Made by a program: the position numbers and the translations under genes. From the sequence record OK905446.1: a stretch of 64,000 nucleotides of DNA; one strand, written 5' to 3'. How positions within the stretch are numbered: position 1 is the stretch's first letter; every line of letters begins with the position of its first letter. Below, in pieces: positions 25,621 through 52,228 of the stretch. The notes beneath the pieces were generated by a model, which searched no databases, was not told the origin of the DNA, and saw nothing but the letters and a program-made list of their open reading frames with translations.

Positions 25621-25711
25621 GCAATACAAAGGATCAAGGAGGGATTGTCTTTATGCGTTAATAATAGCAGTTACATTCACGGGTTTAAACAAGTATTTAA
25701 TACTAATAATA

Positions 25712-25797
25712 CTAATATCTCTAAGTTCACTAAAACCCCTAATACTACTAAGATGATGCGGAATTTTTCCGCCTCTTTCCATTCTGCCGCTTCGCTC
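25712..25797 (-). repeat. 86-bp dispersed element, copy 1 (inverted relative to 52046-52131)
   Basis: Reverse complement matches 52046-52131 with 2 mismatches. Confidence 0.95.
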
Positions 25798-25800
25798 ATA

Positions 25801-25830
25801 CAAAAAAGGGTGAGAAATAAATCTCACCCG
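25801..25830 (-). terminator. intrinsic terminator after short tail fibre genes
   Basis: Minus strand GGGTGAGA-tttatt-TCTCACCCTTTTTTG. Confidence 0.8.
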
Positions 25831-25869
25831 TTTATTCATATTGACTTTCAAGCTATACTATGATTGTCT

Positions 25870-27291
25870 TTATGCAGTTCTTTCCCACATGTAAACAGTG
25901 TAGTACGGCTGAATGTTGTTGTGCGCTTGGTTGCCACCAACTGGTGACGTGTAATACAAGTAGTTATCTCGGTCAGTCTTACGAGAACCCGGGTTATTAC
26001 GCCCGTACTGATAAGCTACACCGAATCCCACACCGTTGCCGTCGTGATGTTCACCCCAACCCGCGTGTTTGTGAGACGGGATTGTTGCTTCAGTTAGAGT
26101 AACTTCATACTCACCGCCAGTTTGACGAATGTTGAATGTTCTGCCGCCATATGACCCCTCTGAAACAAGAACTCTACCTTGTGCTAAACGAGTCCATGTC
26201 CCGCCAAATAATGTTGCAGGTGATGTTGACACAAGAGACATGTAAACTGCACCGACTGGATACATGTTCAGCATAGCTCTAGATGCAATCAAACCATTCT
26301 GCATTAATTGAGTGCCAGAAACTGACTGAATGTTATTTACTTTCAGCGTTCCATTTATTGTACCGCCAGGTGCACCAATCTTTTCATTATTCAGCTTGTA
26401 TCCCATAGCTGCACTAAGTGCTTGTAATGGGTCATTGGTTGTTAAGTTGTTTGCAATCTTTGCAACACCTACGCGAGAACTATTCGCGCTGAATAAACTC
26501 AACGTGCCAACTGTCACTGCGTGATCGTTTGATGAACGAGCATTCGCAACTGTTGCGTCTGGAAGATAAAAACCAGCTTTTCGAGTTGTTGTTGCTGTTC
26601 TGAAGTTAAAACGATACGGCGAAATTGCAAGATTGTCTTCACTCACTGAAGTACTGTTAACTTCTGTTCCGTTTGCTAAACGAATCAAACCTTTCGTAGA
26701 TTCCGAAGCGTCTGATGCTGTAGTGTTAGCCCATACATCGAGCATTTGCTTGACTCGCTGAGGAGTCATTGCTACAGTTGACGATAATGAGCCTGTTGTA
26801 GTAGCTTGTGCTGATGTCGCTAGACGCACAGCACCCGGTGCAGATTCAGTCGCATAGAAGCGGTTGTTCAATGCATAGTTCAACGTCTTCAGCGTGAATG
26901 CGTGACTCTGTGCTGCTTCGACTGGCGCAGACGGTGAAACTGTATCAATCGTAGTTTCAGTGATCAATTTAACGAAACCAAACTGAACTTCAGTTGCAGT
27001 TGCGTGATTTTCCATCCAGTAATTCAGTGCGTACGGTGTGACCGCGCTCGTGTCATTCGCTGGGTTTGAAACTGCCGTTTCGTCGCTTAGTAATGTAATA
27101 CCTGCGACGGTCGTCGATGCGACTGGATAATCTGGGATTGGTGACAGCGCATGTTCTTGAATCAATTCAAGGCATGTCTGAAGATCGTCATTGCCGCCAG
27201 TCTGCCCTTCAAAGGCAGTACCAGCAACTTCGACTGTAACCGTACCCGCATCATCAATCACGTGGTTGAAAATTTGAGTTCCTTTACTCAT
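25870..27291 (-). CDS. gp12: short tail fibre, paralogue B
   Basis: PVASTTVAGITLLS, ASESTKGLIRLA repeats, YPVGAVYMS collar, HKH metal motif, GGNQAHNNIQPY. Confidence 0.85.
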   Translation of the reverse strand: MSKGTQIFNHVIDDAGTVTVEVAGTAFEGQTGGNDDLQTCLELIQEHALSPIPDYPVASTTVAGITLLSDETAVSNPANDTSAVTPYALNYWMENHATATEVQFGFVKLITETTIDTVSPSAPVEAAQSHAFTLKTLNYALNNRFYATESAPGAVRLATSAQATTTGSLSSTVAMTPQRVKQMLDVWANTTASDASESTKGLIRLANGTEVNSTSVSEDNLAISPYRFNFRTATTTRKAGFYLPDATVANARSSNDHAVTVGTLSLFSANSSRVGVAKIANNLTTNDPLQALSAAMGYKLNNEKIGAPGGTINGTLKVNNIQSVSGTQLMQNGLIASRAMLNMYPVGAVYMSLVSTSPATLFGGTWTRLAQGRVLVSEGSYGGRTFNIRQTGGEYEVTLTEATIPSHKHAGWGEHHDGNGVGFGVAYQYGRNNPGSRKTDRDNYLYYTSPVGGNQAHNNIQPYYTVYMWERTA

Positions 27292-28826
27292 TTAACTCGT
27301 CTCCAAATATAAACGGCGTAGAATGGCATCATATTTTCATGAGCCTGATTCCCTCCGACTGGTGATGTGTAGTACATGTAGTTATCATGGTCAGTAGCAC
27401 CCATGCCCACATTATTTCTTGAACCTGTATAGCCGAATGGCCAGTAGTCAACATAGCTATATTGAGTACATTTGTAAGTTACACCGTATGGGTTACGAAT
27501 CTCGTCGTATTTGATACATTGTGATTTAGAACCCGTGTATGCTTCACCCCAACTAGCATGACTATGTTTGGGCAATTGCGATTCCGTTAGTTTTACTCTG
27601 CTATCATTTCGAGTAGAACCGGCTGAGAAATAACGCTTACGAAGACCATCATTCCCTGTCCCTTCACCCATCATCGTCTGACCGCCAGTGATTCGATACC
27701 ATATCCCACCGAAAATCGTATTCGGATCGACGTTTGCAGTACAATGGAAAATACTACCAATTGGGCGACCTGCTAGACCAATTTTTCCATCTAACTGATC
27801 ATTCGGGAACATTTCTCTGTTCTCAGTTACATTGACATAATACGTACCGTTATAGTTCGTTTGTTTTTGTCTAGTAACTAGTTTACTGATGATATTGTCA
27901 CACTGAAGTGTTCCGGTAATCGTACCACCAGTAGGTCCCAATTTGTCTGCTAGATCGTACCCTAGTGCTGCGCTTGTTACTTGCGTGCTATCATTCAAGT
28001 ACGTAGCAGGTAATTGAAAGAATCCGTGATTGTCAGACGTACCTAATAAATTGTCTATCGTGTTTGGGGTGATTGCGTATTCATTTGCATCACTTGCGTT
28101 TCTATCATAGTTGTTTTGAGTTAGCTTAAACGCGCCTCGCTTTGCTTTAGCTGCCGAGACATAATTCAAGCCTTTCACGCTGATTGCGATTGATGCATCT
28201 GATTTGTTAGAATCACCGGGACCAACTGTTCTTAGAACACCCTTCAATGATTCAGTTGCTTGAGACCATGGGTTCGGAATCTCAGTCTTGATTAAGTTCC
28301 ACGTTCTCATCGGTGAAATGAATCGGTTTGGTGCGTATGACAGTGATTCAGCAAGCGTTGCAAATTGCGAAAACCCACGAGACTGATCAGTTGTGTCATC
28401 GTCAAGTGCGTTTCTGACTGTCATCATTTCTTCTAATCGACGATATGATAGCAATCGACTTGCGTCTGATGATGCATAAGTCCGAGTCAAATCAATTGTG
28501 CGTAGTTCTTGTAAGTTACCTAACTGAGTATCCGTTGCTGGCGATACAAACTGATCAACCCCGTCAAGAGTCTCAGGTGTAAGCACAGTTAGCAGATCGT
28601 CTAGTGCATTTGCCTCGACTTGAGTTGAATATTCAACCGCCCCTAGCTCAGTTGAAGTCGCATAAGGGAGTGGTGGCAATTCAGCTAACGCACTTGGGTC
28701 GATTTGCTCTAAGATACTCTGTACGTCACCGCCCGACTCAAAAGCTGCGCCAGGCGATACGAACGGTTGCAGGTAAACATATTGTGCCTCGTCACTAACG
28801 TGCGTGAATATGTTTGTTCCTGACAT
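27288..28826 (-). CDS. gp12: short tail fibre, paralogue A
   Basis: NIFTHVSDEAQYV N-terminus, ATESLKGVLR repeats, collar domain, HSH motif, GGNQAHENMMPF. Confidence 0.85.
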   Translation of the reverse strand: MSGTNIFTHVSDEAQYVYLQPFVSPGAAFESGGDVQSILEQIDPSALAELPPLPYATSTELGAVEYSTQVEANALDDLLTVLTPETLDGVDQFVSPATDTQLGNLQELRTIDLTRTYASSDASRLLSYRRLEEMMTVRNALDDDTTDQSRGFSQFATLAESLSYAPNRFISPMRTWNLIKTEIPNPWSQATESLKGVLRTVGPGDSNKSDASIAISVKGLNYVSAAKAKRGAFKLTQNNYDRNASDANEYAITPNTIDNLLGTSDNHGFFQLPATYLNDSTQVTSAALGYDLADKLGPTGGTITGTLQCDNIISKLVTRQKQTNYNGTYYVNVTENREMFPNDQLDGKIGLAGRPIGSIFHCTANVDPNTIFGGIWYRITGGQTMMGEGTGNDGLRKRYFSAGSTRNDSRVKLTESQLPKHSHASWGEAYTGSKSQCIKYDEIRNPYGVTYKCTQYSYVDYWPFGYTGSRNNVGMGATDHDNYMYYTSPVGGNQAHENMMPFYAVYIWRRVK

Positions 28827-29530
28827 TATGCAATCCTTCTATAGTAATAAACTGTATCTGGGAATGTTAGTGTGTCTGTGTAATACAGTTCCCACTCACC
28901 GTAACCTAAGCTCTTCTGACCGTCTGATGTACCCGTCACAACGCTTTGAGCTTGAATCCCTGTTGGACTACCCTCAGGGTCTAAAATGTCTGTGAGCGTC
29001 GATGTGTACGCTGTATTGTGCGGTCTAGAACTACGGTGTTTCAAAAGAAACGTGTTCGACGGTGCAACGTGGTCTGTTGGTACAGTATCAAACAATGCCG
29101 ATGCGTGAAGAGCCGTGAAGACCTTTTCTGCAATGTCGTTGTCTGAATCACCGACGTTAAGTTGAACTGATACACCATACAAGCTGATGTTATCTACGCC
29201 TGATGTTCCGCTATACGTGATTGTTTCATTGAACTGGTTCGTGTTGAACGGGTTCGTTGCGTCTGATGAAGCAATAATCGTACCTACTGGCATGATTGCT
29301 GCCATTGCAAGCTGCATGATAGCAGCTTGAACGTTTGGATCCCACGCACCCTCTTGAATCTCATCAATTGTCGAGTCGCCCAACACCGCGCCGCGGAAGT
29401 TGAAGCGATCACCCGGGAACAAGCCCGAGTCATCAATTGATGTTTGATCGAAGATTTTCATGCGAGAATCATTGCTCCACACTCGTGACGCATGTCTTGC
29501 TTTAGTTGTCATTATGCAGTCCTTAACCAA
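28826..29530 (-). CDS. gp11: baseplate wedge subunit/short fibre connector
   Basis: Synteny between gp10 and gp12; MPVGTII...LGYGEW...YYYRRIA. Confidence 0.8.
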   Translation of the reverse strand: MVKDCIMTTKARHASRVWSNDSRMKIFDQTSIDDSGLFPGDRFNFRGAVLGDSTIDEIQEGAWDPNVQAAIMQLAMAAIMPVGTIIASSDATNPFNTNQFNETITYSGTSGVDNISLYGVSVQLNVGDSDNDIAEKVFTALHASALFDTVPTDHVAPSNTFLLKHRSSRPHNTAYTSTLTDILDPEGSPTGIQAQSVVTGTSDGQKSLGYGEWELYYTDTLTFPDTVYYYRRIA

Positions 29531-31758
29531 GTGTATGCAGTGATGTACGGTTGAGTTACGTCAACTGCTTGTGCTACCTGACCGTGGTTGACTTTGATTG
29601 GCTCTTCTTTGTAGTAAGCCAGAGGAACGGTGTTCTCTGGGTCACCTAGACAGCCATTCAAGTTAATATCACCACCCGCTGTTGCTGAACGCGCAACTAA
29701 GCTATATTGCTCAGTCGTGTTACCGATGTCGCGCTCTGCTTCATTGTTGTAGTTGGGGTTTGTAGTACTTATCAGTTCTGGGATGTTAGCTTTAGTCAGC
29801 GTAACACCAATTGAACCACCAGTACCACCCGCTTGAACAATGTTTTCGTTGTTATTGTTTCGATGGAATTTACCGTCATCATTCGGGTTCCAGCCAACGA
29901 TTGTACGACCGGGACCGTAACGAACCCAAGTACCAAATCCCATGTAATCGGCTGGGTTATTCGGGTTGTTTGCATTCGTGTAAACTGAACCAATCGGGAA
30001 GATACTTTCAAACAATGAAATCAACGTACCACCCGGTGCGAATGTTTCAGGGTCTGGTAGTACTTCAGTAACTGCCGCACTTGGGTTTAGTGGGTCAGTG
30101 TACAGAATTTTGTTGAAGCGTCGAACGTCTGCCCAGTCGTCACGAGATACGAAGATCTCACGAGTTCTTTCTTGCAGGTTATCGTCGCCTTCATCCCATG
30201 AAAGAAGCGTACCGATTACGTTATCGTACCAACGAACTGTCACGATGTCGCTATCGCTTAGTGCTTCAGCAAAAACTAGCGTATTCCAGCGACCTTGAGC
30301 ATCTTGAATGTAGTCGAAATCGTAATCGCCGCCACTTTGACTATCACCGTTACCGGCTGTGTTGGCACGTGTCAACTGAGTACCGTTCACAAGAACTTCT
30401 AGCGTTTCTGTGTTGAATTGTGTATACTCTGGGAAACCGAAGTCTACTAGCTCAACTGTCATATCAGGAACAAATTCTTTCTTGACAATAGCACCCGGTG
30501 ACTCTTCGACCCCATAGTTGTTTTCGTCAATTAGTCTAATCGACTTCAAAACATAGCTGCTACGGAAACTCGATACGTCACTCAAGTAAGTAACCATTGC
30601 AATCGGGTCGTTTTCGTTGGCAGGTAGACGCAAGCGAATAGTTCTGCCGTCTAACGGTGCCAAATCATCGTTTGTCAATTGTTTCCAACGACTATCAACT
30701 GTCAGGTCTGTATAGCCCGCTGCTGAAGTATGGGAAATCAAACATTCAAACGTTTGAGAGAACCCGCCATGATCTTGAGTTACAATATCACCAACTGAAT
30801 ATGCGGTTGAGCCAGCGTGGTCTACGTAATCTGGGAAATCTGCAAATTCAGCCCAGTTGTTCTCTTGCCATGTACCAATGCTGTTATGCTCGACAATACA
30901 TTGCCACACACGGTCGTCGCGACCTGTAACTGCATCACCTCGAACTAAATCACCTACATAGTACGTTTCAGGGTTATTAGCAACCCATGCATCAACTGTA
31001 TGTAACGGTACTGAACCGTAGTCGCTGAAGTCGTTTAAATCTGTACCGAAGTACAGCAAGTTACCACGACGATAAACTTCAACCGCTGCTTGGTTGTATA
31101 TACCACCGTTTAGCTCAAGTGACATGTTAAAGTCACGCTGATCTTGACGTGAAATCAATGCACGACGCAAAACACTAGGAACATCACCAAATGTCAAACC
31201 GTTTACGTATTTCTGAGCAACGTATTCCCAGTGGCGTGGTGGCGTGAAAACTAGTTCTAAGTCTTGGTATGCATTGCTGAATTCAGCACCTGAACCCAAT
31301 TCGTTTTGTGCTGCGCCTGCTACACGTTTAATCGAGTCTTTAGGGTCCGGGTAGATTGTTACAAGCTGTTTATCCCATGTCCCTTTAACGTCACGAACTC
31401 GAATAGCTTTGCCGTAGTCTGCTTCTTCTACACCTGCTGGTAGATATACGTTCACTGAACCAAGAGACGTGTCGACCGTCCATGACTCACCGAAGCTTGC
31501 ATATAGCTCAGGACCCTGACCATCGCCGTTCTCGTCGAAATACAGTTCAGCGTTAGCAGGGTTGTACGATGAATCACCGTTCAGATATGTAGAAGCAAAT
31601 TTCCAAGTGCGCCAAGCACCGGCAGCATATAGTCTGCTACCGTCGCCTAAATGACTGTATATTTCGTCGAAATTGTCGCGAGTCTTGATGCCACCTTGTC
31701 GTAGGTAATCACCAGTACCGTCGTCAACAATTTGCCCGACGTTGATCGTCTGTTTCAT
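29512..31758 (-). CDS. gp10: baseplate wedge subunit/tail pin
   Basis: MKQTINVGQIVDDGTGDYLRQGG, FPIGSVYTNANNPNNPADYMGFGTW, VTQPYITAYTWLRTA. Confidence 0.93.
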   Translation of the reverse strand: MKQTINVGQIVDDGTGDYLRQGGIKTRDNFDEIYSHLGDGSRLYAAGAWRTWKFASTYLNGDSSYNPANAELYFDENGDGQGPELYASFGESWTVDTSLGSVNVYLPAGVEEADYGKAIRVRDVKGTWDKQLVTIYPDPKDSIKRVAGAAQNELGSGAEFSNAYQDLELVFTPPRHWEYVAQKYVNGLTFGDVPSVLRRALISRQDQRDFNMSLELNGGIYNQAAVEVYRRGNLLYFGTDLNDFSDYGSVPLHTVDAWVANNPETYYVGDLVRGDAVTGRDDRVWQCIVEHNSIGTWQENNWAEFADFPDYVDHAGSTAYSVGDIVTQDHGGFSQTFECLISHTSAAGYTDLTVDSRWKQLTNDDLAPLDGRTIRLRLPANENDPIAMVTYLSDVSSFRSSYVLKSIRLIDENNYGVEESPGAIVKKEFVPDMTVELVDFGFPEYTQFNTETLEVLVNGTQLTRANTAGNGDSQSGGDYDFDYIQDAQGRWNTLVFAEALSDSDIVTVRWYDNVIGTLLSWDEGDDNLQERTREIFVSRDDWADVRRFNKILYTDPLNPSAAVTEVLPDPETFAPGGTLISLFESIFPIGSVYTNANNPNNPADYMGFGTWVRYGPGRTIVGWNPNDDGKFHRNNNNENIVQAGGTGGSIGVTLTKANIPELISTTNPNYNNEAERDIGNTTEQYSLVARSATAGGDINLNGCLGDPENTVPLAYYKEEPIKVNHGQVAQAVDVTQPYITAYTWLRTA

Positions 31759-31767
31759 TATTGTCCC

Positions 31768-32736
31768 TTACGATAGTCTGATTGTTTCGATAGATTTGAT
31801 AGCAATTGAAACGTTGTCATCATTAGAAGTGATGTCAAGTACAATAACACCATTGTCAACTCTAGGCTCAATCAGAATCAAGTTACCAAAATCTTTGTCT
31901 GTATTGATTACTGAGTATTCATCAATATAAACGTCTGTTACATTATTTAGCAGCAACAATTCCGAAGACATACGACGAGTAACCGCACCGCCTTGTAGTG
32001 GGTCGCTGTTCTCTGCATATACCATCAATTTACATGCTGCATATGATAGTACGTCAAAGAGCGGCATTGTAACTGTCACTGTATCTGGGATTGAGTAAAT
32101 CGTGTCGTTTACTGGCGCGCCAAAGTCACCTACTAGTGGGTTGATCTTGATACCCCATTGTGGCGTCCCTGCTAGACCTGTACCATCGTCGATTACTGTA
32201 CAAACAATATGACAGCGATTCGTACGAACGATTTGTGTGCCGTTTAGCTCAGAAGCACCTACGATAGCATCACCCGCCGATGGTGAAATTACAATCGGGT
32301 TTGTATCTAGCGTCGCAGTAGTGTTTTGAAATTCAATTCGCTCACCGCGTTTTGCCATACCCGCAGTCGTTCCGATTTTAGGCAAGTTCAGCGTCATTGA
32401 TGCACCGCCACCTAGTGCTGATGTATCAATGTCGTATTTCCCGCCTGTCACGATAGAAGTAAGCAAGTTTGTGTTGTTCGGTCCACCAGAACCACCCGCG
32501 GTTGAACTTGGAGGAATTCTGTTCCAATACCCACCTGCATGTGGTCGAGGTGCGTTGTCGTTGTATGCAGGGATATAGTTTTCACCTGCTTCAGTCAATT
32601 CAAAGTCTGAATTGATGTGGTAGAACTCGTCTGAGTTATCACGCAGCTTGTTACCACCGTTGTGAATTGTATCACCAGTACCAACCGAACCCGCAGTACC
32701 AGTTTCTAATCTTTGTCGTCCCATCTTAATCTCCAA
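31768..32736 (-). CDS. gp9: baseplate wedge long-tail-fibre connector
   Basis: GSVGTGDTIHNGGNKL N-terminus; C-terminal IAIKSIETIR. Confidence 0.88.
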   Translation of the reverse strand: MEIKMGRQRLETGTAGSVGTGDTIHNGGNKLRDNSDEFYHINSDFELTEAGENYIPAYNDNAPRPHAGGYWNRIPPSSTAGGSGGPNNTNLLTSIVTGGKYDIDTSALGGGASMTLNLPKIGTTAGMAKRGERIEFQNTTATLDTNPIVISPSAGDAIVGASELNGTQIVRTNRCHIVCTVIDDGTGLAGTPQWGIKINPLVGDFGAPVNDTIYSIPDTVTVTMPLFDVLSYAACKLMVYAENSDPLQGGAVTRRMSSELLLLNNVTDVYIDEYSVINTDKDFGNLILIEPRVDNGVIVLDITSNDDNVSIAIKSIETIRLS

Positions 32737-32780
32737 GAAAGGCGCGATCTTCGCGCCTAATGAGTTATTTACTGTATTTA

Positions 32781-33812
32781 TTAGAAGTTGTAGATCAAGT
32801 TGAACTCTTCTACTTGGTCGAGCGTCTTACGAATCGGCTGTCGGTTTTCCATATAGATTACCTGACCAGTGCCGGCTTGAATCTGATATGGGTCATAGCG
32901 TGTTTCAGTCGCTTTCGTGTCTTCAGTCGCACCTTCTTCTCGAACTAGTAACGGGTTTTGAACTATCGAAATTTGACGATAGCCCTGATTCCCGGGTCCG
33001 AACAAGTGAATGAAGTCAGAACCTGCTAGTTTAGCTCTGAATCGAAGCTGAACTGCACCGACACTGAAAATCGTCTCGTCGTAGTTCTCGTTGAAAACGA
33101 TGTTCTGATCAAGACCCCAAGCCACGCGATTTTCAATGATGTCTTCTGGGAACGGACATACGATGTATTCTTGCGTTACGTTCGTCAGAACTTCGTTCGG
33201 CGGAATCGTGTACAAGTATTCCCAAATGTAGCCATCACCTGTTTCAATCGCGTTGCCTGTACCGTGAGGGATGTTCTCTTGGTTGCCAGGTGATGAAGGC
33301 GCTAGCCATTCCCCGCCAACCGCCACACAGTCGTCTTTGTTTGTCACTGTTGCAATCGAACATGTACCGCGAATGTTAGTGTTATTCGGGTCTGTTTCAG
33401 GGATGTCAATGCAGCGATAAACCATGTAACCGTTCAACGCGCTCGGGTGACTGTTGACAGACATTGTGTTAACTGTTACGATGTCCCCGAACGTAAAACG
33501 AAGCGAGTTATTCAAATCAGGGTCGCCCCAATCCTTACGAGGGATTACAGGGCGAAGCTGTGCTTTTGGTATCTTGATCAGACCTAGCGCACGAGCCCAA
33601 ACGTCAGCTTTACCGTCTGGGCTATCGTTAGGATAAGGTGGCGCGAAGTTTATTTCATCTTCGCGATCTGACCATGGTTCATTACGACCGAACATAAGGT
33701 AAATTGTGTTCTTGTCGTCTTCATCACCTACGTTTTCGTAGAAGTTCATCAAGTTATTAACTCGATATTCTGTTGTGATTGTTGATCTGTAAATTTTTGC
33801 CACTTTATTCAC
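32781..33812 (-). CDS. gp8: baseplate wedge subunit
   Basis: IYRSTITTEYRVNNLMNF, FAPPYPND, VIPRKDWGD, GDGYIWEYLYTIP. Confidence 0.93.
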   Translation of the reverse strand: MNKVAKIYRSTITTEYRVNNLMNFYENVGDEDDKNTIYLMFGRNEPWSDREDEINFAPPYPNDSPDGKADVWARALGLIKIPKAQLRPVIPRKDWGDPDLNNSLRFTFGDIVTVNTMSVNSHPSALNGYMVYRCIDIPETDPNNTNIRGTCSIATVTNKDDCVAVGGEWLAPSSPGNQENIPHGTGNAIETGDGYIWEYLYTIPPNEVLTNVTQEYIVCPFPEDIIENRVAWGLDQNIVFNENYDETIFSVGAVQLRFRAKLAGSDFIHLFGPGNQGYRQISIVQNPLLVREEGATEDTKATETRYDPYQIQAGTGQVIYMENRQPIRKTLDQVEEFNLIYNF

Positions 33813-39915: not shown

Positions 39916-39947
39916 CTACTTCGTCAACTTAACTAAGAGAGCAAAAC

Positions 39948-40823: not shown

Positions 40824-40836
40824 TACAACAAACATT

Positions 40837-40863: not shown

Positions 40864-40876
40864 AAAGGAAAAATAC

Positions 40877-41531: not shown

Positions 41532-41532
41532 A

Positions 41533-42015: not shown

Positions 42016-42019
42016 TCAA

Positions 42020-43237: not shown

Positions 43238-44508
43238 TATTTGTTGCTCCCCGCAATTGCTATATTCACTGATGAATCACTCGAAAGCTCAAGAGTCGTT
43301 ATGAATGCATTTGGCTCTACACGATGTTTAAGCTCATGAACAATCCAACGACCTGACGCATCTAAACTAGAATGATTCTCACCCGTTACAGCGTGATAGT
43401 CCATGAACACGACATCACCCACAGTGATATTTGTATTTCCCGGGATTTCGACAATGATCTGCTTCGCTTTCAGATAAGTCTCTTCCATTAGAGATACGCC
43501 ATGAATAGACCCAAGCGGGTGTTTATTATCATGCTCGTAAAACCCATCGTTTGGCAATAACTGAATGCTATTCAATGGCTGTTCAGTCTCAGGTACTTCA
43601 CTTGCAAATTCAAGATTATCGGTATACATGTGAGCACGTTCATTGAGTATGCCAACTTGAGCTATGTAGTCGCTTCGACGAACGTCTTTTGTTGTCAATT
43701 TCTTTCGAATTAAACTATGAGAATATGTCCTAGACCCAAATAATCCACTAGAAATCTCATGCATGTTAGATTGTTCTTTCACCACAACTCGCAATGCTGT
43801 GATTGTGTTTGTGTTGCCTGATGTCCATTTACCATCACCAGTATCAGCACCCTTGCGAATTATGTATTCGTACTCTTTTGAACGAATTGTACCAAGAGAC
43901 GCGAACTTAACTGAATCTCGGTCTTCGTAGAACAAGAATTTACAGCTATTGTTCACGTCTGTGCTTGCGTGATCGACAATGCTCTTAATGATGTCATAAG
44001 GCTTGCCGATTTTTGTGACGAAATCTCTTTGATACAACGATGTTTCGATGTCGTACACGGGAGCTTCATCGCCTAAATTATCAAGAATTGACTTGATGAT
44101 GTTCGATATACTAGTTTTGTTAAACACGTACGGGCGCTTAACATAATCGTTCAACGTAATCAAGTTGTTTGTGAAACGTACTAATACAGATTCAAATCCA
44201 CCTGTTCTAGCTGGCATTCTTGATATGCCTGTAGCACGGAACGATTTTTGATATACTCGATTTGCTTGCTCCCCGACATACGACGCAAACTCAACGTCGA
44301 TAGCTTCAAATCCCGTCATGCGAATCGTGTCAACGACACCAATCGAATCTTTGAACATGAACATGCCAGAAACCAACCCATTAAGTGATTCATAAATTTC
44401 CATGTGAGTGATTTCATTCTCCACAGTCGCGGAGAAATCTAGACCACGAATATGAATCTTGCTAACCACAAAGTTCTCAACTGGGTTAGCGGAGCGCATT
44501 TCAAACAT
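43237..44508 (-). CDS. gp27: baseplate hub protein
   Basis: ITHMEIYESLNGLVSGMFMFKDS, PGNTNITVGDVV, WIVHELKH resemble T4 gp27. Confidence 0.75.
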   Translation of the reverse strand: MFEMRSANPVENFVVSKIHIRGLDFSATVENEITHMEIYESLNGLVSGMFMFKDSIGVVDTIRMTGFEAIDVEFASYVGEQANRVYQKSFRATGISRMPARTGGFESVLVRFTNNLITLNDYVKRPYVFNKTSISNIIKSILDNLGDEAPVYDIETSLYQRDFVTKIGKPYDIIKSIVDHASTDVNNSCKFLFYEDRDSVKFASLGTIRSKEYEYIIRKGADTGDGKWTSGNTNTITALRVVVKEQSNMHEISSGLFGSRTYSHSLIRKKLTTKDVRRSDYIAQVGILNERAHMYTDNLEFASEVPETEQPLNSIQLLPNDGFYEHDNKHPLGSIHGVSLMEETYLKAKQIIVEIPGNTNITVGDVVFMDYHAVTGENHSSLDASGRWIVHELKHRVEPNAFITTLELSSDSSVNIAIAGSNK

Positions 44509-44509
44509 T

Positions 44510-45088
44510 TTATACCCCTGATAATTTCATAAATGTGCTAATGTATGTGCTTACATCATCGGTAGACAATACATTAATCACTCGACTTTCTTCGTTTCGG
44601 TTGAACTCATATTCATCAACTGAAACTGGAATCATTACGCCATGATAAAGAATTTCTCGATGATCTTCTTGACCTTCTTCAGGCGCGTTATTGTTCCAAT
44701 CAAATTCGTTGTACCAGTTTCGTGGGTTTTCTGGGTCTTCGACCATATCAAACCACCAACGACCTTGCTCATCTACATGGTGATGAACTTGCTCATTGCC
44801 ACCGATATATTGATAACGATAAATAGCGTTCTCAGAAACGGTTTCGTTGGGCTGAACCCAATCATAAAACGGGTCAACTCTTTGATTTAAAAGCATAATC
44901 ATCCAATACAGCGACGTATCACCGTACAGTTCATATGCAATCTGTTCGGGGCGATAGTCGCCCCTAATTTTATACTGAATCAGCGTGTAAGACGGGATGA
45001 TCTGCTTGTGATAGTAATTCAAATTTTTGAATATGTTAGCCGTCTCAACACCTTGATATTCAGTCTTGTCAAATATCGCGAAAATCAT
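44510..45088 (-). CDS. gp53: baseplate wedge protein (LysM-like)
   Basis: YRPEQIAYELYGDTSLYWMIMLLN...DPFYDW. Confidence 0.93.
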   Translation of the reverse strand: MIFAIFDKTEYQGVETANIFKNLNYYHKQIIPSYTLIQYKIRGDYRPEQIAYELYGDTSLYWMIMLLNQRVDPFYDWVQPNETVSENAIYRYQYIGGNEQVHHHVDEQGRWWFDMVEDPENPRNWYNEFDWNNNAPEEGQEDHREILYHGVMIPVSVDEYEFNRNEESRVINVLSTDDVSTYISTFMKLSGV

Positions 45089-46233
45089 TAGAATAAGCTC
45101 CCAATATCACCAAAGAATGAACCCGAATCATTGCTGTTGCCGCTTGCAGTAGTCGTACCGTTATCGTAACCACGAACGCTACTTGCTTGATCTCGCTCGT
45201 ACATTGCACGATCCATAGGGATAAGTTCGCTGAATGTAATCTCAAGCTCGATGCCTGCCGGGTCACCTGCTGTGCCTCTGAAAGTTCGCCAGTATTGATC
45301 TGGTGTTCTGTTCAATTTAACTGAAGTGATACCCGCGGGACCGAAAACGAATCGTGGCGTGTATCTTGCTGCGTCAACATCTGACACTTCTTCAATCATC
45401 CACACAGGTGGCGTTTTCAACAACGTCGCATATTTTGCAAAACCATTCGCAAAACCAGAGCCTAGATTTGCAGTGCCAGTATCTAATAGCTGTGATGAAA
45501 TCTGACCTTTAACTGGCAGCGACAAGCGATAAAACGTCTTGATAATCTCACCAACAATCTTCAACTCATCGAGTGATTTTGGGTGAAATTGATACATCAA
45601 AGTTTGTTGACGTTGCGCGGTACCCTTGTATGCCGTGACAGTAACGTTATCAGTAACGACGCTGCTGTTTTTCTCAAGCTGACCGGCTGCATTCGATTGA
45701 ATGAACGAACGTTTAATCTGTGCCAACGTCGCACCTGCTGCTGTAGCAACGGCTTTCTTACCCGCTTCAACACCCTGAGATACAGTATCTGCACCTGCCG
45801 CGGTAGCTGCTGCCGCTAAGAAATCATTAAGAACAGACGTTGGTGTTTTGTCGTATTCGTGTGAAACTTCTTCAATTAGGTTAGGAGCATACAATGCCAT
45901 AGTTGCCATCAACTCGCTCGGGATCTCAGCCGCTTGCTTTGATTCTTTCGACGAAGCAGTGAATGATTGTCGCATATCCGTGTAATGTTGCTTAGTTGTA
46001 CTCGCCAAGTCATATGCACGAAATATGAAGAAGTTCGAGTGACCAGAACGTGCGCCTAAATTTGGCGGATATGTCAATGCCACAATATTAGACGTGCTTA
46101 CTCGCCCTTGGTCGGTCTCTTGAGTAATTTCTGATGTGCTGCTTTCAACTCCGCCACTATCAGTAACAGCCAACACACGGTCAAGCGTATCACTCTGTTT
46201 GCCGCTAAGACCTATGTAACCAAATAGTCCCAT
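45088..46233 (-). CDS. gp48: baseplate tail tube cap
   Basis: R..MYQFHPKS.DE...V.EIIKTF, PPVW, FGPAGITSV, IELEITFSE. Confidence 0.85.
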   Translation of the reverse strand: MGLFGYIGLSGKQSDTLDRVLAVTDSGGVESSTSEITQETDQGRVSTSNIVALTYPPNLGARSGHSNFFIFRAYDLASTTKQHYTDMRQSFTASSKESKQAAEIPSELMATMALYAPNLIEEVSHEYDKTPTSVLNDFLAAAATAAGADTVSQGVEAGKKAVATAAGATLAQIKRSFIQSNAAGQLEKNSSVVTDNVTVTAYKGTAQRQQTLMYQFHPKSLDELKIVGEIIKTFYRLSLPVKGQISSQLLDTGTANLGSGFANGFAKYATLLKTPPVWMIEEVSDVDAARYTPRFVFGPAGITSVKLNRTPDQYWRTFRGTAGDPAGIELEITFSELIPMDRAMYERDQASSVRGYDNGTTTASGNSNDSGSFFGDIGSLF

Positions 46234-46259
46234 GTTAGTTTCTCCTTAAAATATATCTG

Positions 46260-46281
46260 TATTTAGACGCGATACTAAATA
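46260..46281. promoter_or_regulatory. divergent late promoters
   Basis: CTAAATA on - (46260-46266) and on + (46275-46281). Confidence 0.7.
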
Positions 46282-46298
46282 TAAGAAAGGAGGCGTTT

Positions 46299-46754
46299 AT
46301 GGCATATTCTGGCAAATACGTTCCAACAAACAAATCAAAGTACAAAGGCAATTATCAGAAGATCGAGTACCGAAGCTCATGGGAATTGTCTTTCATGCGC
46401 TGGTGTGACAACAACCCGCATGTTGTTCGTTGGAATTCTGAAGAAATCGTTATACCTTACGTTAGCTCGGCTGATGGGGGTAAAAAACGTAGATATTTCA
46501 TGGACTTTTTTGTAGAACTATCTGACGGAAGAAAGTTCATTTTTGAAATCAAACCACACAAAGAAACGATCCCACCTGAGAAGCCACAGCGGCTGACTGA
46601 GAAGGCAAAAAAGAGACTCTTGCACGAGGTTTACACATACAGAGTAAATCAAGACAAATGGACTGCTGCGATTAAATTTGCGAAGCAAAAGGGATGGACG
46701 TTTCGAGTGTTAACCGAACACGGTCTTAGAAAATTAATAGGACTTAGAGTATGA
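46299..46754 (+). CDS. gp4: head completion protein (TnsA-like nuclease fold)
   Basis: MAYSGKY.PTNKSKYKG, YRSSWE, WNSEEIVIPY, RRYFMDF, EIKP. Confidence 0.95.
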   Translation: MAYSGKYVPTNKSKYKGNYQKIEYRSSWELSFMRWCDNNPHVVRWNSEEIVIPYVSSADGGKKRRYFMDFFVELSDGRKFIFEIKPHKETIPPEKPQRLTEKAKKRLLHEVYTYRVNQDKWTAAIKFAKQKGWTFRVLTEHGLRKLIGLRV

Positions 46755-47155
46755 TTAGTGATTATCTAGATGATGCATGGATTGATGAACGAGCATATCA
46801 TGTACCCGAGGCGGATTTAGCCGTTACTCTTGAGTACGCAAAAGAGAACGGGGTAAATAAGACTGCTGGTCTTTCATCTGAACAAGCACTTGAAATGTGG
46901 GCAAATGATGATTATAAAAATTATCAAATAGCTAGACGTGCAGAATATATGCACACCGAAGAATATAAAGAAAAGATCAGCAATGCAAATCGCGGGAAGA
47001 CTCGTTCAGAGAAATCTAAGGCTGCATATCGAAAGGCGGCTAGTTCTAGACCGAAGTCGGCTTGCCCACATTGTGGTAAGCTATACGCAAAGCCAAATAT
47101 GGCTCAACACGAGCCTAGTTGTAGACGAAAACACAGCGAGGTAGAACATGGCTAG
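46751..47155 (+). CDS. NUMOD3/zinc-finger protein, homing-endonuclease-related
   Basis: EEYKEKISNANRGKTRSEKSK (NUMOD3-like) and CPHCGK...H...C; no GIY-YIG/HNH motif seen. Confidence 0.6.
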   Translation: MISDYLDDAWIDERAYHVPEADLAVTLEYAKENGVNKTAGLSSEQALEMWANDDYKNYQIARRAEYMHTEEYKEKISNANRGKTRSEKSKAAYRKAASSRPKSACPHCGKLYAKPNMAQHEPSCRRKHSEVEHG

Positions 47156-47744
47156 AACAGATAGATCACCGAAGAAAAAAGAGAGTCTTCTTGCCAGCTT
47201 TCAAGCTCAAACTCATGAGCTTGGTCGTACTCCAATTGCAAAGAATCAGCGAAAATCACTAGCGTGGTTTAAAAAGCGAGTTCATGACGCAATTCGTAGT
47301 CGAAAAGTGCAAGTTCCACACAAAGGCAACATGTATGTTTTCGCGTACGACGCAAAGACCAAACATCAATTACCGTATTGGGATAAGTTCCCATGTATCA
47401 TATGCTTGGGGCAACAAAAGGGATATATGCTTGGTTTGAACTTGCATTACATCCCGCCCAAAGATCGCGAGAAATTTTTAACTACATTACTAAGATTCGC
47501 AAACACGAAAACAGTTAGCAACTCCACGAAGCTTATGATTGACTGGGGTCGAGTGAAAAACATTAAATTCAGTAAACATATGGTGAAATTGTACATTCTA
47601 AAGCGTATCAAAGGTTCGCTTGAAGAAGTTAAACCACATGACTGGTACAACGTTATTCACATGCCATTGCAACAATTCGTTGCCAAAAATGGTCGCAACA
47701 TTTCTGCTGTTCGTGCGTACGATGATCGTTATAGAAGGAGATAA
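47148..47744 (+). CDS. gp2: DNA end protector protein
   Basis: YVFAYDAKTKHQLPYWDKFP, GLNLHYIPP. Confidence 0.93.
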   Translation: MARTDRSPKKKESLLASFQAQTHELGRTPIAKNQRKSLAWFKKRVHDAIRSRKVQVPHKGNMYVFAYDAKTKHQLPYWDKFPCIICLGQQKGYMLGLNLHYIPPKDREKFLTTLLRFANTKTVSNSTKLMIDWGRVKNIKFSKHMVKLYILKRIKGSLEEVKPHDWYNVIHMPLQQFVAKNGRNISAVRAYDDRYRRR

Positions 47745-47747
47745 CGA

Positions 47748-48494
47748 ATGGCAATCGGAATAGATGTTAAGAAGTTCTTATCTCACATCACGAAGAACGA
47801 CTTAGCAAGACAAAACTTGTATGCGGTGCGATTTGCATCGCTGCAAGATACAGCAAAGCAAGTCATGAATACCGGCGAATCATTCTTGAACGCCGATTTC
47901 AGTGACATTAAGGGTGTCGGTGTGCAAGATGCCCTTGCTTCAACTGCTTCGCTATTCGGATCTGGGTTTGAGTTTGAACGAAATATAGGGATGATGGTTA
48001 AATCAGTCAACATCCCAGGTTCGTCGTACGAAACAGACGTTGATAAGACACGTCGCAGACCTCATCACGTAGTCAAAGCAAAGACCGATGAGACGGTCAC
48101 TATGTCGTTGTATTTGTCACCAACTCACCCAGAGCGTAAGATGCTGCTAGGTTGGTTTAAGCAAATCTACGCGAATGATTCAGCACAAGTTGGATTCTTC
48201 GCTAACTATGCTCGTACAATCGAGATCTACACGTACGACCGAAATGCAGACATGGTAACAATGACCAGTCTTAAAAATGCGTTTCCGATTCGTGTTGGTG
48301 GGGTTCAACTAGGTTACGAAAACAACAACGCGGTCGCTGAATTTGAAGTTGAATTTGTGTATGAAAGTGCATCATATATGACTGAAGATTTATCAAGCAC
48401 AGTCTCGGATGCGTTGGGTATCACTCAGAACTTCGAGAAAACATATAACAGCTTTTTCAATACAGGCACTGAATTGATTTCAGGTCTATTCTAA
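47748..48494 (+). CDS. gp54: baseplate tail tube initiator
   Basis: DLARQNLYAV, VKSVNIPG, AFPIRVGGVQLGYENNNAVAEFEVEFVY. Confidence 0.85.
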   Translation: MAIGIDVKKFLSHITKNDLARQNLYAVRFASLQDTAKQVMNTGESFLNADFSDIKGVGVQDALASTASLFGSGFEFERNIGMMVKSVNIPGSSYETDVDKTRRRPHHVVKAKTDETVTMSLYLSPTHPERKMLLGWFKQIYANDSAQVGFFANYARTIEIYTYDRNADMVTMTSLKNAFPIRVGGVQLGYENNNAVAEFEVEFVYESASYMTEDLSSTVSDALGITQNFEKTYNSFFNTGTELISGLF

Positions 48495-48504
48495 GGTAAA
48501 CATC

Positions 48505-49353
48505 ATGACCAAAACATTTGATATTAGCGTACTAGCTGCGCCACAATATACTGTAAAACTACCATCAACTGGTGAAGAAATTAAACTGCGTGCAATGCTT
48601 GCAAAAGAGCACAAAGCATTGCTAATCGCGAATGAATCCGATGAAAAGATAGACGCAATCGAACAATGTCTTGAAAACTGTATTGTTTCTGACATCAACA
48701 TGGACGAACTGACTGTTGGTGATGCTGAATATCTGTTCTTGCACATGTACATGAACAGCAATGGTGTGACTAGCATTCAAGCCGAATACAACTGCTGTGC
48801 AGATAAGCCAGAAGAAGAGCTTCAGAAACTTTCTCAAGAGGAAGAAGCAGAGCTTGAAAAATCTGCCGATGACATCTTCGCTGAGATCATGAATCAATCA
48901 GACGAAGAAGCAATCGAATCTGTGTTTGCACCAGAAAAACATTTGTGTGGTGAACGAATTACAACAAACATCGACTTGAAATCTGCATTCGTACCGGAAT
49001 ATAAAGGCGAAGACTTTGTTAAAGTCAACCCTCGCGTTGTAATCAAGTTGCAACACCCAACTATTCGCGTTTACGAGAACAACGACCCGAATACACCACA
49101 AGGGTTGTTCAACATTGCAGTTGCTGCGATTAAAGAAGTTCACGTTGGCGATACTGTGTACACCAAAGAAGAATTGGAAGCTCAGAATCAACTAGTCAAC
49201 ATCATGGGCGAACTCGACACGGCAGCATTCAAGAAAGTTCAAACGTTTGTTGATTCTGTACCGCGTGTGACATCACACATCGACGTTAAATGTCCGAAGT
49301 GTGGCAACCACGAGAAAGTAACCCTACGAGGCATCGAAGATTTTTTCGTATAA
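48505..49353 (+). CDS. gp26: baseplate hub assembly protein
   Basis: VKLPSTGEEIKLR, two Cys clusters, CPKCG...LRGIEDFF. Confidence 0.88.
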   Translation: MTKTFDISVLAAPQYTVKLPSTGEEIKLRAMLAKEHKALLIANESDEKIDAIEQCLENCIVSDINMDELTVGDAEYLFLHMYMNSNGVTSIQAEYNCCADKPEEELQKLSQEEEAELEKSADDIFAEIMNQSDEEAIESVFAPEKHLCGERITTNIDLKSAFVPEYKGEDFVKVNPRVVIKLQHPTIRVYENNDPNTPQGLFNIAVAAIKEVHVGDTVYTKEELEAQNQLVNIMGELDTAAFKKVQTFVDSVPRVTSHIDVKCPKCGNHEKVTLRGIEDFFV

Positions 49354-49520
49354 TGCTCGGTAGATACTCACTTGAAGAGTATTACAAGGAAAATTTTGCC
49401 ATGATCACTCATGGCAATTTCTCTCTTCACGATTTAGAAACAATGGTTCTATTCGAGCGTGAAATCTATGCCGCACAGCTTATACATTACATCCAAGAAA
49501 AGAATAAGGAACAACAATAA
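49353..49520 (+). CDS. gp51: gp51-like C-terminal module (standalone or frameshift fusion)
   Basis: EEYYKENFAMITHGNFSLHDLETMVLFEREIY resembles C-terminus of T4 gp51; TAATG overlap; upstream T TTT TTC heptamer. Confidence 0.8.
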   Translation: MLGRYSLEEYYKENFAMITHGNFSLHDLETMVLFEREIYAAQLIHYIQEKNKEQQ

Positions 49521-51478
49521 TGGCGGCTGACGACAAGAAGATGAATGAGATAATCGGAAGATTAGATCATATCATTCTTCAACAAGAAGACCGACCTGAA
49601 GTTTATACGATGCAGCGCGTGGCTCGTCATATCAGTAACATTGATATTACAACCACGTCGATGCTCGAAACTATGCAGTCGGTGTTTAAAACAAATGAAA
49701 AAGCAGTAGCACAGCAAAAAGGTCTGTTTCAGCGTGTTATTGAAAACTTTGATCAGACATCTAATAAAGTTCGTGCTGCGATCATATCACTTACTGATGT
49801 TATCAAAACGACGTTAGACTTTAAAGGCCATCTGAATCGAATCAACCGCGGCATTCAAGAAATGCACTTGACTGCAAAAATGCAGTTCGCACGTATGCAG
49901 GAGGGGTTTACTCGTTGGTTTGAACGTCTGATTTTCAGAGTCAATGACATGAAGCGCGTCATAGGGCTTCAGAAGACGGCTGCTGATGATTTGAATAGTT
50001 TCTTGACGAACGGTGCGGGTAACAACTCGCCGCTTACTGTGGGCTTTATAAGCGCGTTGTACAAGAAGATATTTGCGTATCAAGTTGTAACCGAAACACG
50101 AAATCGTAAAACTGAACTTCATCGTTACAAAGAGAACATGAAAGTTCAGCGCAACCAAGCAAAAGACTTGAAGCGAATTGCCACACATCTGGTCGGTCAG
50201 AAATTAGGTTGGATTGCTAAAGTATTCAAACTGTTTGGTGCATTTGTCACGTTTCTTGGCGGACAAGCAATACTTCTATCAACATCGTTAGCCAATGCTT
50301 CTATGGCAGCATCAAAATTCGGCGCACTAGGACGTATAGCATCAACGATCTTGCTCGGATTTGGTAAATTCGGTAAAGGAACGGGTAACATAATTCAAGC
50401 TCTAGCAACTGACATGTCAGGTACTGTTAAAGGCTGGATGATGTTCGTCGTGAAAAGACTGTTCTTAGGTCTAGGCCGAATGATCGGCATTATGCTAAAC
50501 CCAGTTGCGTTGATTGGTATGCTTGCAGGTTATGGTATTTACAAGCTATTCGAAGAAGAAATTGACCGAATTTTCGTAGCACTGAAAAGCATATTCTCAG
50601 ACCCCGAAAAACGAGCCGCATTGTTTGCAATGGTCTCGAATTGGTTTAATGGCGTAATTCAGAGCATTTCGAACTGGTTTGGCGGTGTCGGTGAGAGTAT
50701 TGAAGAAGCAATACCTGAAGGTGCAGTCGAAGGCGTAGTTGCTGGCTTCCAGAAGCTAACTTCGTTTGTTCAGAAAGCATTCAATATGTACGTGAACGCG
50801 ATTAACAGCGTGATTGCAAGTTTCTTGTCTATCCCTGACTCGTTCAGATTGCTTATGTTATCAATTCAGAACTTGATGTTAAACATCAAAGAAATGGCTG
50901 GTAGCATTATCGACTGGATCCCAGGTGTTGATAGACCAGAAATGCTAGGCAAAGACAAGCTATCGGCTGAACGAGGGAAGCTAGATGCCGACAAGTCAGA
51001 AGTTAACGCTAGACTGACTGAACGCTATCAAACTAACTACCTAGGGAAAGCTGGGGATGCAATCGCAGACGGTGCTAAGAACGCAGCACAGAGCGTTGTA
51101 GACGGTGCTAAGGGTGTGATGGATGCAGTTAAAGATCCAGCTAAACGTCTTGCGTCATCTGCCGAAACACTTGACAGATTCTTAGCTGCTGAAGTTGAGA
51201 AGAAGCAAATGGAAGAAGACGCCATTGTTGCTGCTGAGAGACAACGTATGATCGACGAAGGGATTATCAAGCCATTCCAAGAGATCAAGCGTTCAGTAAT
51301 CTTAGAAGCAGTCGCAGCGCGTGAAGCAGCATTCAGAGCAGCACAGCAATCGAAAGAAGTCGGTTCGAACTTTGTTAACAACGCTGTAAGCACAGTTCAG
51401 AATACAACGAACTTCACCAGACCATTAACTACAGGTGGCGAAGCTAAGATGCCAACTACAAGAGGTACGTTCAACTAA
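49520..51478 (+). CDS. gp29: tape measure/baseplate hub protein
   Basis: 652 aa helical protein with central hydrophobic segments; follows gp26/gp51. Confidence 0.75.
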   Translation: MAADDKKMNEIIGRLDHIILQQEDRPEVYTMQRVARHISNIDITTTSMLETMQSVFKTNEKAVAQQKGLFQRVIENFDQTSNKVRAAIISLTDVIKTTLDFKGHLNRINRGIQEMHLTAKMQFARMQEGFTRWFERLIFRVNDMKRVIGLQKTAADDLNSFLTNGAGNNSPLTVGFISALYKKIFAYQVVTETRNRKTELHRYKENMKVQRNQAKDLKRIATHLVGQKLGWIAKVFKLFGAFVTFLGGQAILLSTSLANASMAASKFGALGRIASTILLGFGKFGKGTGNIIQALATDMSGTVKGWMMFVVKRLFLGLGRMIGIMLNPVALIGMLAGYGIYKLFEEEIDRIFVALKSIFSDPEKRAALFAMVSNWFNGVIQSISNWFGGVGESIEEAIPEGAVEGVVAGFQKLTSFVQKAFNMYVNAINSVIASFLSIPDSFRLLMLSIQNLMLNIKEMAGSIIDWIPGVDRPEMLGKDKLSAERGKLDADKSEVNARLTERYQTNYLGKAGDAIADGAKNAAQSVVDGAKGVMDAVKDPAKRLASSAETLDRFLAAEVEKKQMEEDAIVAAERQRMIDEGIIKPFQEIKRSVILEAVAAREAAFRAAQQSKEVGSNFVNNAVSTVQNTTNFTRPLTTGGEAKMPTTRGTFN

Positions 51479-52008
51479 TGAAAAACTTGACGATGAAGAA
51501 TAACTTCCGAATCGACATACCAGACAACGGGGCAACGGAAACGTTTCAGTGGCAGATTCAAACTGCCACGATCCCGAGTGTTAATATGGAAATTGCAAGT
51601 ATAAGTCGTGGTTCAAAGTACGCCAAACTAGCTAACAACAACATAGCAGGTTCAGGCACTTCGTACGATGACTTATCAATTCAGTTTCTAGTCGATGAAG
51701 AAATGAGGACTTACGCTGAGTTATACAAGTGGTTAATCACTATGAATAACCCTATTGGTCCCAGTAACAGTGATGGTAAAGTTCCAGTAACTCTATTGCT
51801 ACATGTTCTAGACAATAACAAAGAAAAGACTGTTGCTACGTATCGCTTTATCAATGCGTTCCCGAAGTCATTAAGTGCAATCGAATGGAACTACACAGAA
51901 TCAGGTGACGTTGAAACAGTTACATGTGATGTTGAGTTTGAATACGCCTACTTTGAAATGGTTCATAAAGTAGATGGCAAAGAAGTAACAATCACACCCA
52001 TCGGCTAA
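51478..52008 (+). CDS. gp3: tail tube terminator
   Basis: NNFRIDIPD, QTATIPSV, YDDLSIQFLVDEEMRTYAELYKW, FINAFPKSLS. Confidence 0.92.
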   Translation: MKNLTMKNNFRIDIPDNGATETFQWQIQTATIPSVNMEIASISRGSKYAKLANNNIAGSGTSYDDLSIQFLVDEEMRTYAELYKWLITMNNPIGPSNSDGKVPVTLLLHVLDNNKEKTVATYRFINAFPKSLSAIEWNYTESGDVETVTCDVEFEYAYFEMVHKVDGKEVTITPIG

Positions 52009-52010
52009 AT

Positions 52011-52032
52011 TAAGCCCCTTCGGGGCTTTTTT
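52011..52032 (+). terminator. intrinsic terminator, UUCG loop
   Basis: AAGCCCC-TTCG-GGGCTTTTTTG. Confidence 0.85.
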
Positions 52033-52045
52033 GTATCTGAATCTA

Positions 52046-52131
52046 GAGCGAAGCGGCAGAATGGAAAGAGGCGGAAAAATTCCGCATCATCTTAGTAGTA
52101 TTAGTAGTTTTAGTGAACTTAGAGATATTAG
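52046..52131 (+). repeat. 86-bp dispersed element, copy 2, with 9-bp TAG iterons continuing to about 52155
   Basis: Inverted copy of 25712-25797; TAG at 52093, 52102, 52111, 52120, 52129, 52138, 52147. Confidence 0.95.
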
Positions 52132-52228
52132 AAAAATTAGAGAAACTAGTGTAATCCCCACTTGTTTAGAATACGCCATTTTCATCGTATAATCGAGATA
52201 CGAAACAACTATTGACTGGTAACTCATT

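Follow-up and report, generated by a model that had tools for sequence, protein, structure and literature searches.

Among the T4-type phages, only the replication origins of T4 itself have been mapped. The T4 genome contains several such origins, each linked to a promoter and each encompassing an easily unwound stretch of DNA; no sequence motif is common to them, they rely on MotA promoters, and their unwinding element lies on the downstream side of the promoter. A different kind of repeated intergenic sequence has been described for nt-1 and KVP40, namely, the PeSL cassettes, which combine a terminator-like stem-loop, with the consensus A3-4G3-loop-C3T3-4, with an early promoter, and are present in many copies in variable regions of the genome (PMC4122927). 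Here we analyze a conserved non-coding element, a hairpin followed by an array of abutting 9-bp units that begin with TTAG, in a 64,000-nucleotide (nt) stretch of sequence record OK905446.1 (hereafter, the window). The window is identical to the sequence of Vibrio phage VS1, a KVP40-like member of Schizotequatrovirus and a relative of T4 (position in the VS1 record equals window position plus 62000). A preliminary description of the window presented the element as a two-copy feature and proposed that the copies were iteron-type origins or nucleoprotein sites, with T4 oriE as the precedent. The repeated, conserved, non-coding character of the element and its iteron-like anatomy stand, and the wording that allowed for either a nucleoprotein site or an origin is favored by the comparative evidence, that is, the conserved positions, the spacing, the AT-richness, the copy at uvsY, and the cassette found in Vibrio chromosomal islands; the two-copy scope and the oriE precedent had to be given up. 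Given that these islands copied it, the element looks like a protein-binding control site, one that, judging from the comparison of sequences, most likely starts replication or switches on the next promoter.

A BLAST search of the whole VS1 record yields six copies of the element; besides the two in the window, another is located about 500 bp to the left of the window start. TAG repeated at least 4 times with a period of 9 is found on both strands of VS1 and KVP40 in exactly the six places occupied by the element, and nowhere outside the element copies in VS1, KVP40, or phage 1.081.O. The number of copies per genome is 6 in VS1, KVP40, and VH7D, and 7 in 1.081.O, where the whole element is tandemly doubled between gene 3 and gene 1, with the two copies about 164 nt apart (MG592456.1 207173-207400). 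The six loci are common to VS1, KVP40, VH7D, and the divergent 1.081.O; in KVP40, all are intergenic:

Between KVP40.0061 and nrdH
Between 0135 and the 0136/DNA methylase genes
Between 0251 and the lipoprotein-like gene 0252
Between 12-2 and wac
Between gene 3 and gene 1
Between gene 35 and uvsY

Conservation in related phages, to which the preliminary description had attached its proposal, is evident: the same six intergenic positions recur among about 50 relatives, with the element present in 4-7 places in each of about 50 phage records, all from Vibrio phages, and at the single loci checked in F86, K566, and 6E35.1a. Scans of IMG/VR detected the element in KVP40 and VH7D only, with loose period-9 patterns returning unrelated giant-virus repeats, and a search of one representative genome per species gave a single chance match, in a coding region. 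The copies within a genome are more alike (0.86 identical) than orthologous copies of distant genomes (0.79), which implies some homogenization. The element is mentioned neither in the Schizotequatrovirus genomics paper nor in the paper on the PICMI satellite; the original KVP40 genome paper might contain an earlier mention.

The aligned copies share the same order of parts. A variable, purine-rich spacer separates the left arm, (G/A)AGCGAAGCG(G/A), from a hairpin whose 9-bp stem encloses an AAA loop; then come the trinucleotide ATC and 5-7 abutting 9-bp units with the consensus TTAGWRRWW. Of the 180 units, from 30 copies, that entered the statistics, 177-180 retain TTAG; a purine occupies position 6, and there is otherwise variation at positions 5-9. 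None of the 30 copies contains an insertion or deletion at a unit boundary, so the 9-bp period is constant, as in the tandem direct repeats of iteron origins, and selection evidently acts on the spacing itself. The core of the element is more conserved than its flanks. Within the hairpin, two base pairs are swapped compensatorily, from GGCGGAA/TTCCGC to GGCCCAA/TTGGGC, in one KVP40 copy and two VH7D copies, so that compensatory changes maintain the hairpin. The sense strand gives its more stable fold in 20 of the 30 copies, versus 4 for the other strand (means of -10.0 and -8.0 kcal/mol, respectively), an advantage that is due to G.T(U) wobbles, and the sense strand of the unit spacer positions is nearly devoid of cytosine (G 194 versus C 16). 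A scan of the locus against Rfam 15 gave best matches of 14-18 bits, compared with family cut-offs of 39-91. We also considered a coding role for the array and rejected it: just two copies contain a frame led by ATG, and this frame lacks conservation.

Every copy is co-oriented with both flanking genes. A terminator-like hairpin precedes four of the six, and a sigma70-type promoter-like site lies 3-22 bp beyond the last unit in five; at the remaining locus, next to the lipoprotein-like gene, there is no promoter, and the final units supply the ribosome site and the start codon. The distribution of the six sites is more even than that of random points, with a minimum gap of 26 kb (P = 0.004-0.007 for a minimum gap at least this large). 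When all 54-bp windows of the genome are ranked by AT content, the arrays come out at the 97th-100th percentile; they consist of AT-rich, easily melted DNA. One copy is found at the uvsY promoter, which is where oriF lies in T4. A general link to late promoters was examined and rejected, a T4-type late box being present within 130-330 nt downstream of only two of the six copies, with none near the other four.

The chromosomal islands of Vibrio present another facet of this story. Two metagenome contigs contain a complete TTAG element, at up to 97% identity, and otherwise share nothing with the phages at the DNA level; both belong to chromosomal islands, some of which contain the phage element at 94-97% identity. 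Going by the species names given to identical proteins, the islands are found in V. parahaemolyticus, V. alginolyticus, V. diabolicus, and their relatives, which these phages infect; examples from Vibrio genomes and metagenomes are L165:1-15699, L159:1-20930, and L285:1-8858. They encode a large serine recombinase, a small helix-turn-helix protein, a resolvase, ParA, and a VapE-like primase or, in its place, a gp45-like protein, along with defense cargo including Thoeris, a PstI-type restriction system, Cap4, and KAP NTPase/TIR. Several island genes are derived from phage: a sliding clamp of 345 amino acids (aa) that shows 55% and 42% identity to the two KVP40 gp45 domains and has an additional 135-residue insert; a gp44-like ATPase; a fragment resembling KVP40.0297, a gene that occupies the place of holin gene t of T4; and a homologue of KVP40.0294, of 285-323 aa. 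With this gene content, the islands look like satellites or parasites of KVP40-like phages. The papers on the PICMI satellite and on Schizotequatrovirus genomics do not mention them, no description was found in the literature searched, and the plasmid collection contained no match to the island.

What makes the islands informative is the pairing of a protein with an array. All the island 0294-like genes examined, from three lineages, are preceded, 300-400 nt upstream and on the same strand, by an element of the same architecture, in which AGCGAAGCGA is followed by the hairpin GACAA-TTT-TTGTC, ATC, and 7-10 units of 9 bp, TTC(A/T)TTnnn. These TTC-type arrays, for which no phage counterpart was found, have the opposite base skew (G-poor) to that of the phage TTAG arrays. 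In two V. parahaemolyticus assemblies, the TTC-type element is followed, 110 nt on, by a TTAG element, both directed toward the 0294-like gene. The cassette is part of the replication module of the islands, where it adjoins primase, clamp-loader-like, or clamp-like genes, and in sister islands an unrelated 382-aa gene with 11-nt iterons replaces the 0294-like gene with its TTC array; being swapped for another gene-plus-iteron cassette, the 0294/array pair behaves like a replication-initiator/origin cassette. The TTAG element itself appears as a clean indel of about 180 nt, with an empty site in sister islands and, in the L017 contig, a 9-nt direct repeat flanking the indel; in islands L017 and L018, the array extends into a ribosome site and a start codon, and most of the island relatives lack the TTAG element. 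Two further features were observed in these islands. Upstream of the TTC-type element at L285:3280-3400, there are three tandem 44-nt repeats, each beginning with GGAGCGAAGCGG, so the left-arm motif also occurs on its own. At L165:7545-7575, before the 382-aa gene, there is a promoter in the style of the phages, in which an early-type -35/-10 pair (TTTAGA ... TACAAT) is combined with the T4-type late box TATAAATA.

The KVP40.0294 family is tiny, with 11 representatives among 1.8 billion proteins. The KVP40 gene (NC_005083.2 158949-159764) ends 4 nt before asiA, to which it is translationally coupled both in KVP40 and in a distant T4-like contig; given that every orthologue has a length of 242-243 aa, its start was probably annotated 28 codons too far upstream. 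It lies within the interval between gene 52 and asiA, where T4 has motA, and searches of VS1, KVP40, and 1.081.O detected no homologue of MotA. In the protein, the core is mildly basic and the tail, DLDKVLMSLDEEEF (motif DLDxxLxSL), very acidic; this tail resembles the acidic tail of KVP40 gp32, ELDALLADLELGDD. The structure model, predicted with confidence (predicted local distance difference test (pLDDT) score of 82, predicted template modeling score (pTM) of 0.75), is largely made up of beta structure, and neither a solved nor a predicted fold matched it in Foldseek searches of PDB and AlphaFold clusters or with VIA-align; the sequence has no hit in Pfam, PHROGs, or PDB sequences, the Atlas was uninformative, and neither profile comparison nor fold comparison reveals similarity to MotA. 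By analogy with the islands, the phage 0294 protein is the best candidate for the reader of the TTAG arrays.

The two copies in the window are almost the same sequence. A repeat search of the window finds one long inverted pair, 25703-25797 (minus) versus 52046-52140 (plus), 95 nt long and 95% complementary; across the 86 nt reported in the preliminary description, the copies differ at two positions (TTAGTAGTT versus TTAGGGGTT in unit 2), exactly as it stated. The parts it listed are likewise all in place: both copies have an upstream terminator-like hairpin with the tail TTTTTTGTAT, a purine-rich tract, the GCGGAA-AAA-TTCCGC hairpin, TTAG every 9 nt in 6 and 7 units, respectively, and ACTTGTTTA downstream. 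In the window, five TTAG at period 9 are matched at these two places only, and none of 100 dinucleotide-preserving shuffles of the window contained this pattern. The features of the two copies are the following:

25808-25829, minus: intrinsic-terminator-like hairpin and T run at the end of the short tail fiber gene 12-2 (gene name from the orthologous KVP40 locus)
25787-25797, minus: left arm GAGCGAAGCGG of the wac-locus copy, a motif that also heads island elements
25755-25775, minus: hairpin GAGGCGGAA-AAA-TTCCGCATC of the wac-locus copy, a 9-bp stem with one mismatch
25698-25751, minus: six 9-bp units TTAGnnnnn of the wac-locus copy
25661-25689, minus: sigma70-type promoter-like site, TTTAAA, 17 nt, TATTAT, directed toward wac
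25613-25620: T4-type late box TATAAATA, between the promoter-like site and wac
25571-25573: wac ATG
52012-52028, plus: intrinsic-terminator-like hairpin at the end of gene 3 (tail completion protein; names from KVP40)
52046-52056, plus: left arm GAGCGAAGCGG of the gene 3/gene 1 copy
52068-52088, plus: hairpin GAGGCGGAA-AAA-TTCCGCATC of the gene 3/gene 1 copy
52092-52154, plus: seven 9-bp units of the gene 3/gene 1 copy, six with TTAG and the final one with CTAG
52165-52193, plus: sigma70-type promoter-like site, TTTAGA, 17 nt, TATAAT, directed toward gene 1
52229: ATG of gene 1 (dNMP kinase; name from KVP40)

Elsewhere in the window, 27 tRNA genes are clustered on the plus strand at 55302-63492, as in KVP40. 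In this region, a promoter-like GTTTACA ... TACAAT sequence occurs twice, at 57745-57811 and 57828-57894, in copies of 67 nt each that are 88% identical and 83 nt apart. There is also a tandem repeat at 53977-54093 (54 nt, 2.1 copies, 78% matches). Genome-wide, the heptamer GCGAAGC is 3-4 times more common than the mononucleotide expectation in VS1, KVP40, and 1.081.O, mostly on the sense strand, an excess that may simply reflect codon usage.

The exact spacing of the units, their four invariant letters, and the pairing of protein with array argue together for a cooperative protein-binding array. The explanation that we favor, with a probability of roughly 0.4, is that the element is a cis-acting nucleoprotein site, putatively bound by the 0294 family, that would serve as an origin or initiation module linked to a promoter. 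An origin module is preferred because of the island cassette context, the even spacing of the six sites, the AT-richness, the hairpin, the position at uvsY, and the precedent of the promoter-linked T4 origins. Under this scenario, an early phage protein of the KVP40.0294 family would bind the 9-bp units side by side, and the AT-rich array, the hairpin, and the adjacent sigma70-type promoter would together form a replication-initiation module, following the logic of T4 oriF and oriG, that is, a promoter and an unwinding element, with a dedicated site-specific protein added. Islands that parasitize these phages would have copied the 0294 protein and re-tuned it to their own TTC-type array, and some island lineages would have also taken up the phage TTAG array, such that phage infection would fire the island. 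We infer the binding by the 0294 family, the origin function, and the link to satellite induction from the comparisons described above, and several observations weigh against them. The 0294 model matches no known DNA-binding fold, and its coupling to asiA points to transcription rather than replication. The association of the phage protein with the TTAG arrays is drawn from the analogy with the islands. No motif is shared among the T4 origins, which do not require a protein of this kind. A duplex iteron model does not explain the co-orientation with genes and the better folding of the hairpin on the sense strand. Finally, one locus lacks a promoter, and there, the array runs into the start codon. 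The broader proposal, to be held still more tentatively, is that a previously undescribed 0294-like family reads abutting 9-bp units beside a hairpin and might thereby set the starts of replication, middle transcription, or both, and that the islands captured this pair together with a sliding clamp and would use the phage array as an infection sensor.

A promoter-activating role appears nearly as likely as an origin role, and the two are not exclusive because T4 origin primers come from activator-dependent promoters. We consider it rather unlikely that the element is a promoter enhancer only, whereby the array would bind a stage-specific activator, with 0294 standing in for MotA as the partner of AsiA, would switch on the adjacent promoter and, in the islands, the gene downstream, and would play no part in replication. 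Such an enhancer would fit the translational coupling of 0294 to asiA in KVP40 and a distant T4-like contig, its placement in the interval where T4 has motA, the undetectable MotA in the three phages searched, the promoters that adjoin five of the six arrays, the orientation of all copies with the downstream gene, and the location of the island arrays upstream of, and toward, a 0294-like or Rep-like gene. However, no fixed helical register with the RNA polymerase is kept, given that the last unit lies anywhere between 3 and 22 bp from the -35 hexamer and that the arrays comprise 5 to 7 units; the lipoprotein locus has no promoter, 0294 is unlike MotA in sequence and fold, and the even spacing and the hairpin are left unexplained. 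The co-orientation with genes and the strand bias of the hairpin keep alive a role at the level of RNA or of a displaced strand. In its RNA form, which we deem improbable, the hairpin would protect the 3' end of the upstream mRNA in read-through or polycistronic sense transcripts, and the UUAG repeats, unstructured and poor in C, would act as a processing site or as the operator of a cooperative RNA-binding protein, as in the T4 gene 32 leader. The sense-strand stabilization by G.U pairs (20 of 30 copies versus 4), the near absence of cytosine from the spacers, and the arrays that, at the lipoprotein locus and in islands L017 and L018, lead straight into a ribosome site and a start codon all agree with this possibility; yet four of the six copies lie between a terminator and a promoter and are expected to be transcribed little, there is no Rfam family match, and the island TTC-type arrays preserve the architecture with the opposite skew.

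The element might instead be a DNA site of another kind, either a packaging-initiation (pac) site, recognized by the small terminase, or a fixed entry, nicking, or clamp-loading site that feeds gp45 to late promoters of the same polarity, and to this, we assign a low probability. A satellite needs the packaging signal of its helper, and the islands carry the phage element, along with a gp45-like clamp or a gp44-like ATPase; the orientation of the copies follows local gene polarity, and two of them have a late box 130-330 nt downstream. Against these points, most of the island relatives lack the TTAG element, four of the six copies have no late box nearby, and packaging of the T4 type is not known to require a site. 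Equally poor odds attach to a repeat that is selfish or no more than recombinogenic, a mobile cassette of small size, like the PeSL promoter/stem-loop cassettes or the MITE/REP elements, which would persist without serving the phage. The indel-like presence and absence in the islands, with the 9-nt direct repeat at the ends in L017, the tandem duplication in 1.081.O, and the within-genome homogenization are what such a repeat would produce, but there are just six copies, in the same six loci in all lineages examined, TTAG and the spacing are strongly conserved, and in the islands, the element is associated with a specific protein family. Least credible, to the point of being nearly dismissible, is the idea, following the remark in the preliminary description that the repeats could also invert the 26-kb block between them, that the pair serves to invert this block of structural genes. 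The two copies are indeed inverted and 95% identical over 95 nt, and, from the gene map, gene polarity would stay consistent at both junctions; however, in all related genomes listed, both junction queries are matched whole, on one and the same strand, with about 26 kb between them, which indicates that no inverted arrangement has been fixed among the about 50 related genomes, and the other four copies are not paired in this manner.

Conserved and easy to recognize, the six-copy element would give the KVP40-like phages predictable and testable sites of initiation or activation. In phages without MotA, 0294 would offer a candidate for the missing partner of AsiA. The presence of the element and its presumed reader in islands with a modified clamp and defense genes points to an undescribed satellite or parasite of phages that are relevant to aquaculture, and suggests that an island could sense its phage through a simple cis code.

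The element has features in common with several known systems and differs from each in other respects. With T4 oriF (uvsY) and oriG (34), it shares the multiplicity of sites, the combination of a promoter with easily unwound DNA, and, for one copy, the location at the uvsY promoter; the differences are that the shared hairpin-plus-array, with its AT-rich DNA, is situated upstream of the promoter rather than downstream, that the promoter-like sites, being of the sigma70 type, carry a -35 hexamer, and that MotA is not detected here. Nor do the arrays correspond to the MotA box, a single 9-bp box near -30 that replaces the -35 element, given that they end 3-22 bp upstream of a recognizable -35 hexamer. 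T4 oriE resembles the element in having evenly spaced direct repeats at a phage origin, but these are 12 nt long, are placed at 24-nt intervals within the gene 5 coding sequence, are unrelated in their letters, and are not accompanied by a hairpin, and we accordingly abandoned the oriE analogy. The iteron origins of plasmids, of which the gamma origin of RK6 is one example, are similar in that short tandem repeats of fixed period adjoin the gene for the presumed binding protein, as is the case in the islands, and the RepA/ori system of PLE is an iteron origin of a phage satellite. Unlike in iteron origins, the units abut at 9 bp, so that successive sites spiral round the helix, the candidate protein, 0294, does not have the winged-helix Rep fold, and the phage gene is far from the arrays. 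Ribbon-helix-helix centromere and operator proteins bind arrays of short repeats, such as the omega heptads and the ParG tetramer boxes; here, the likeness lies in the recurrence, upstream of promoters, of a 4-7 nt motif with a short, fixed spacing and in the ParA gene near the element in one island variant, whereas the phage has no partition genes, no ribbon-helix-helix protein was identified, and the element adds a hairpin and a left arm. PeSL, finally, resembles the surroundings of the element, with the same frame of terminator and promoter at four of the six loci; what this frame encloses is outside the PeSL description, namely, a conserved module made of a different hairpin and a TTAG array, present in six copies at conserved loci (PMC4122927).

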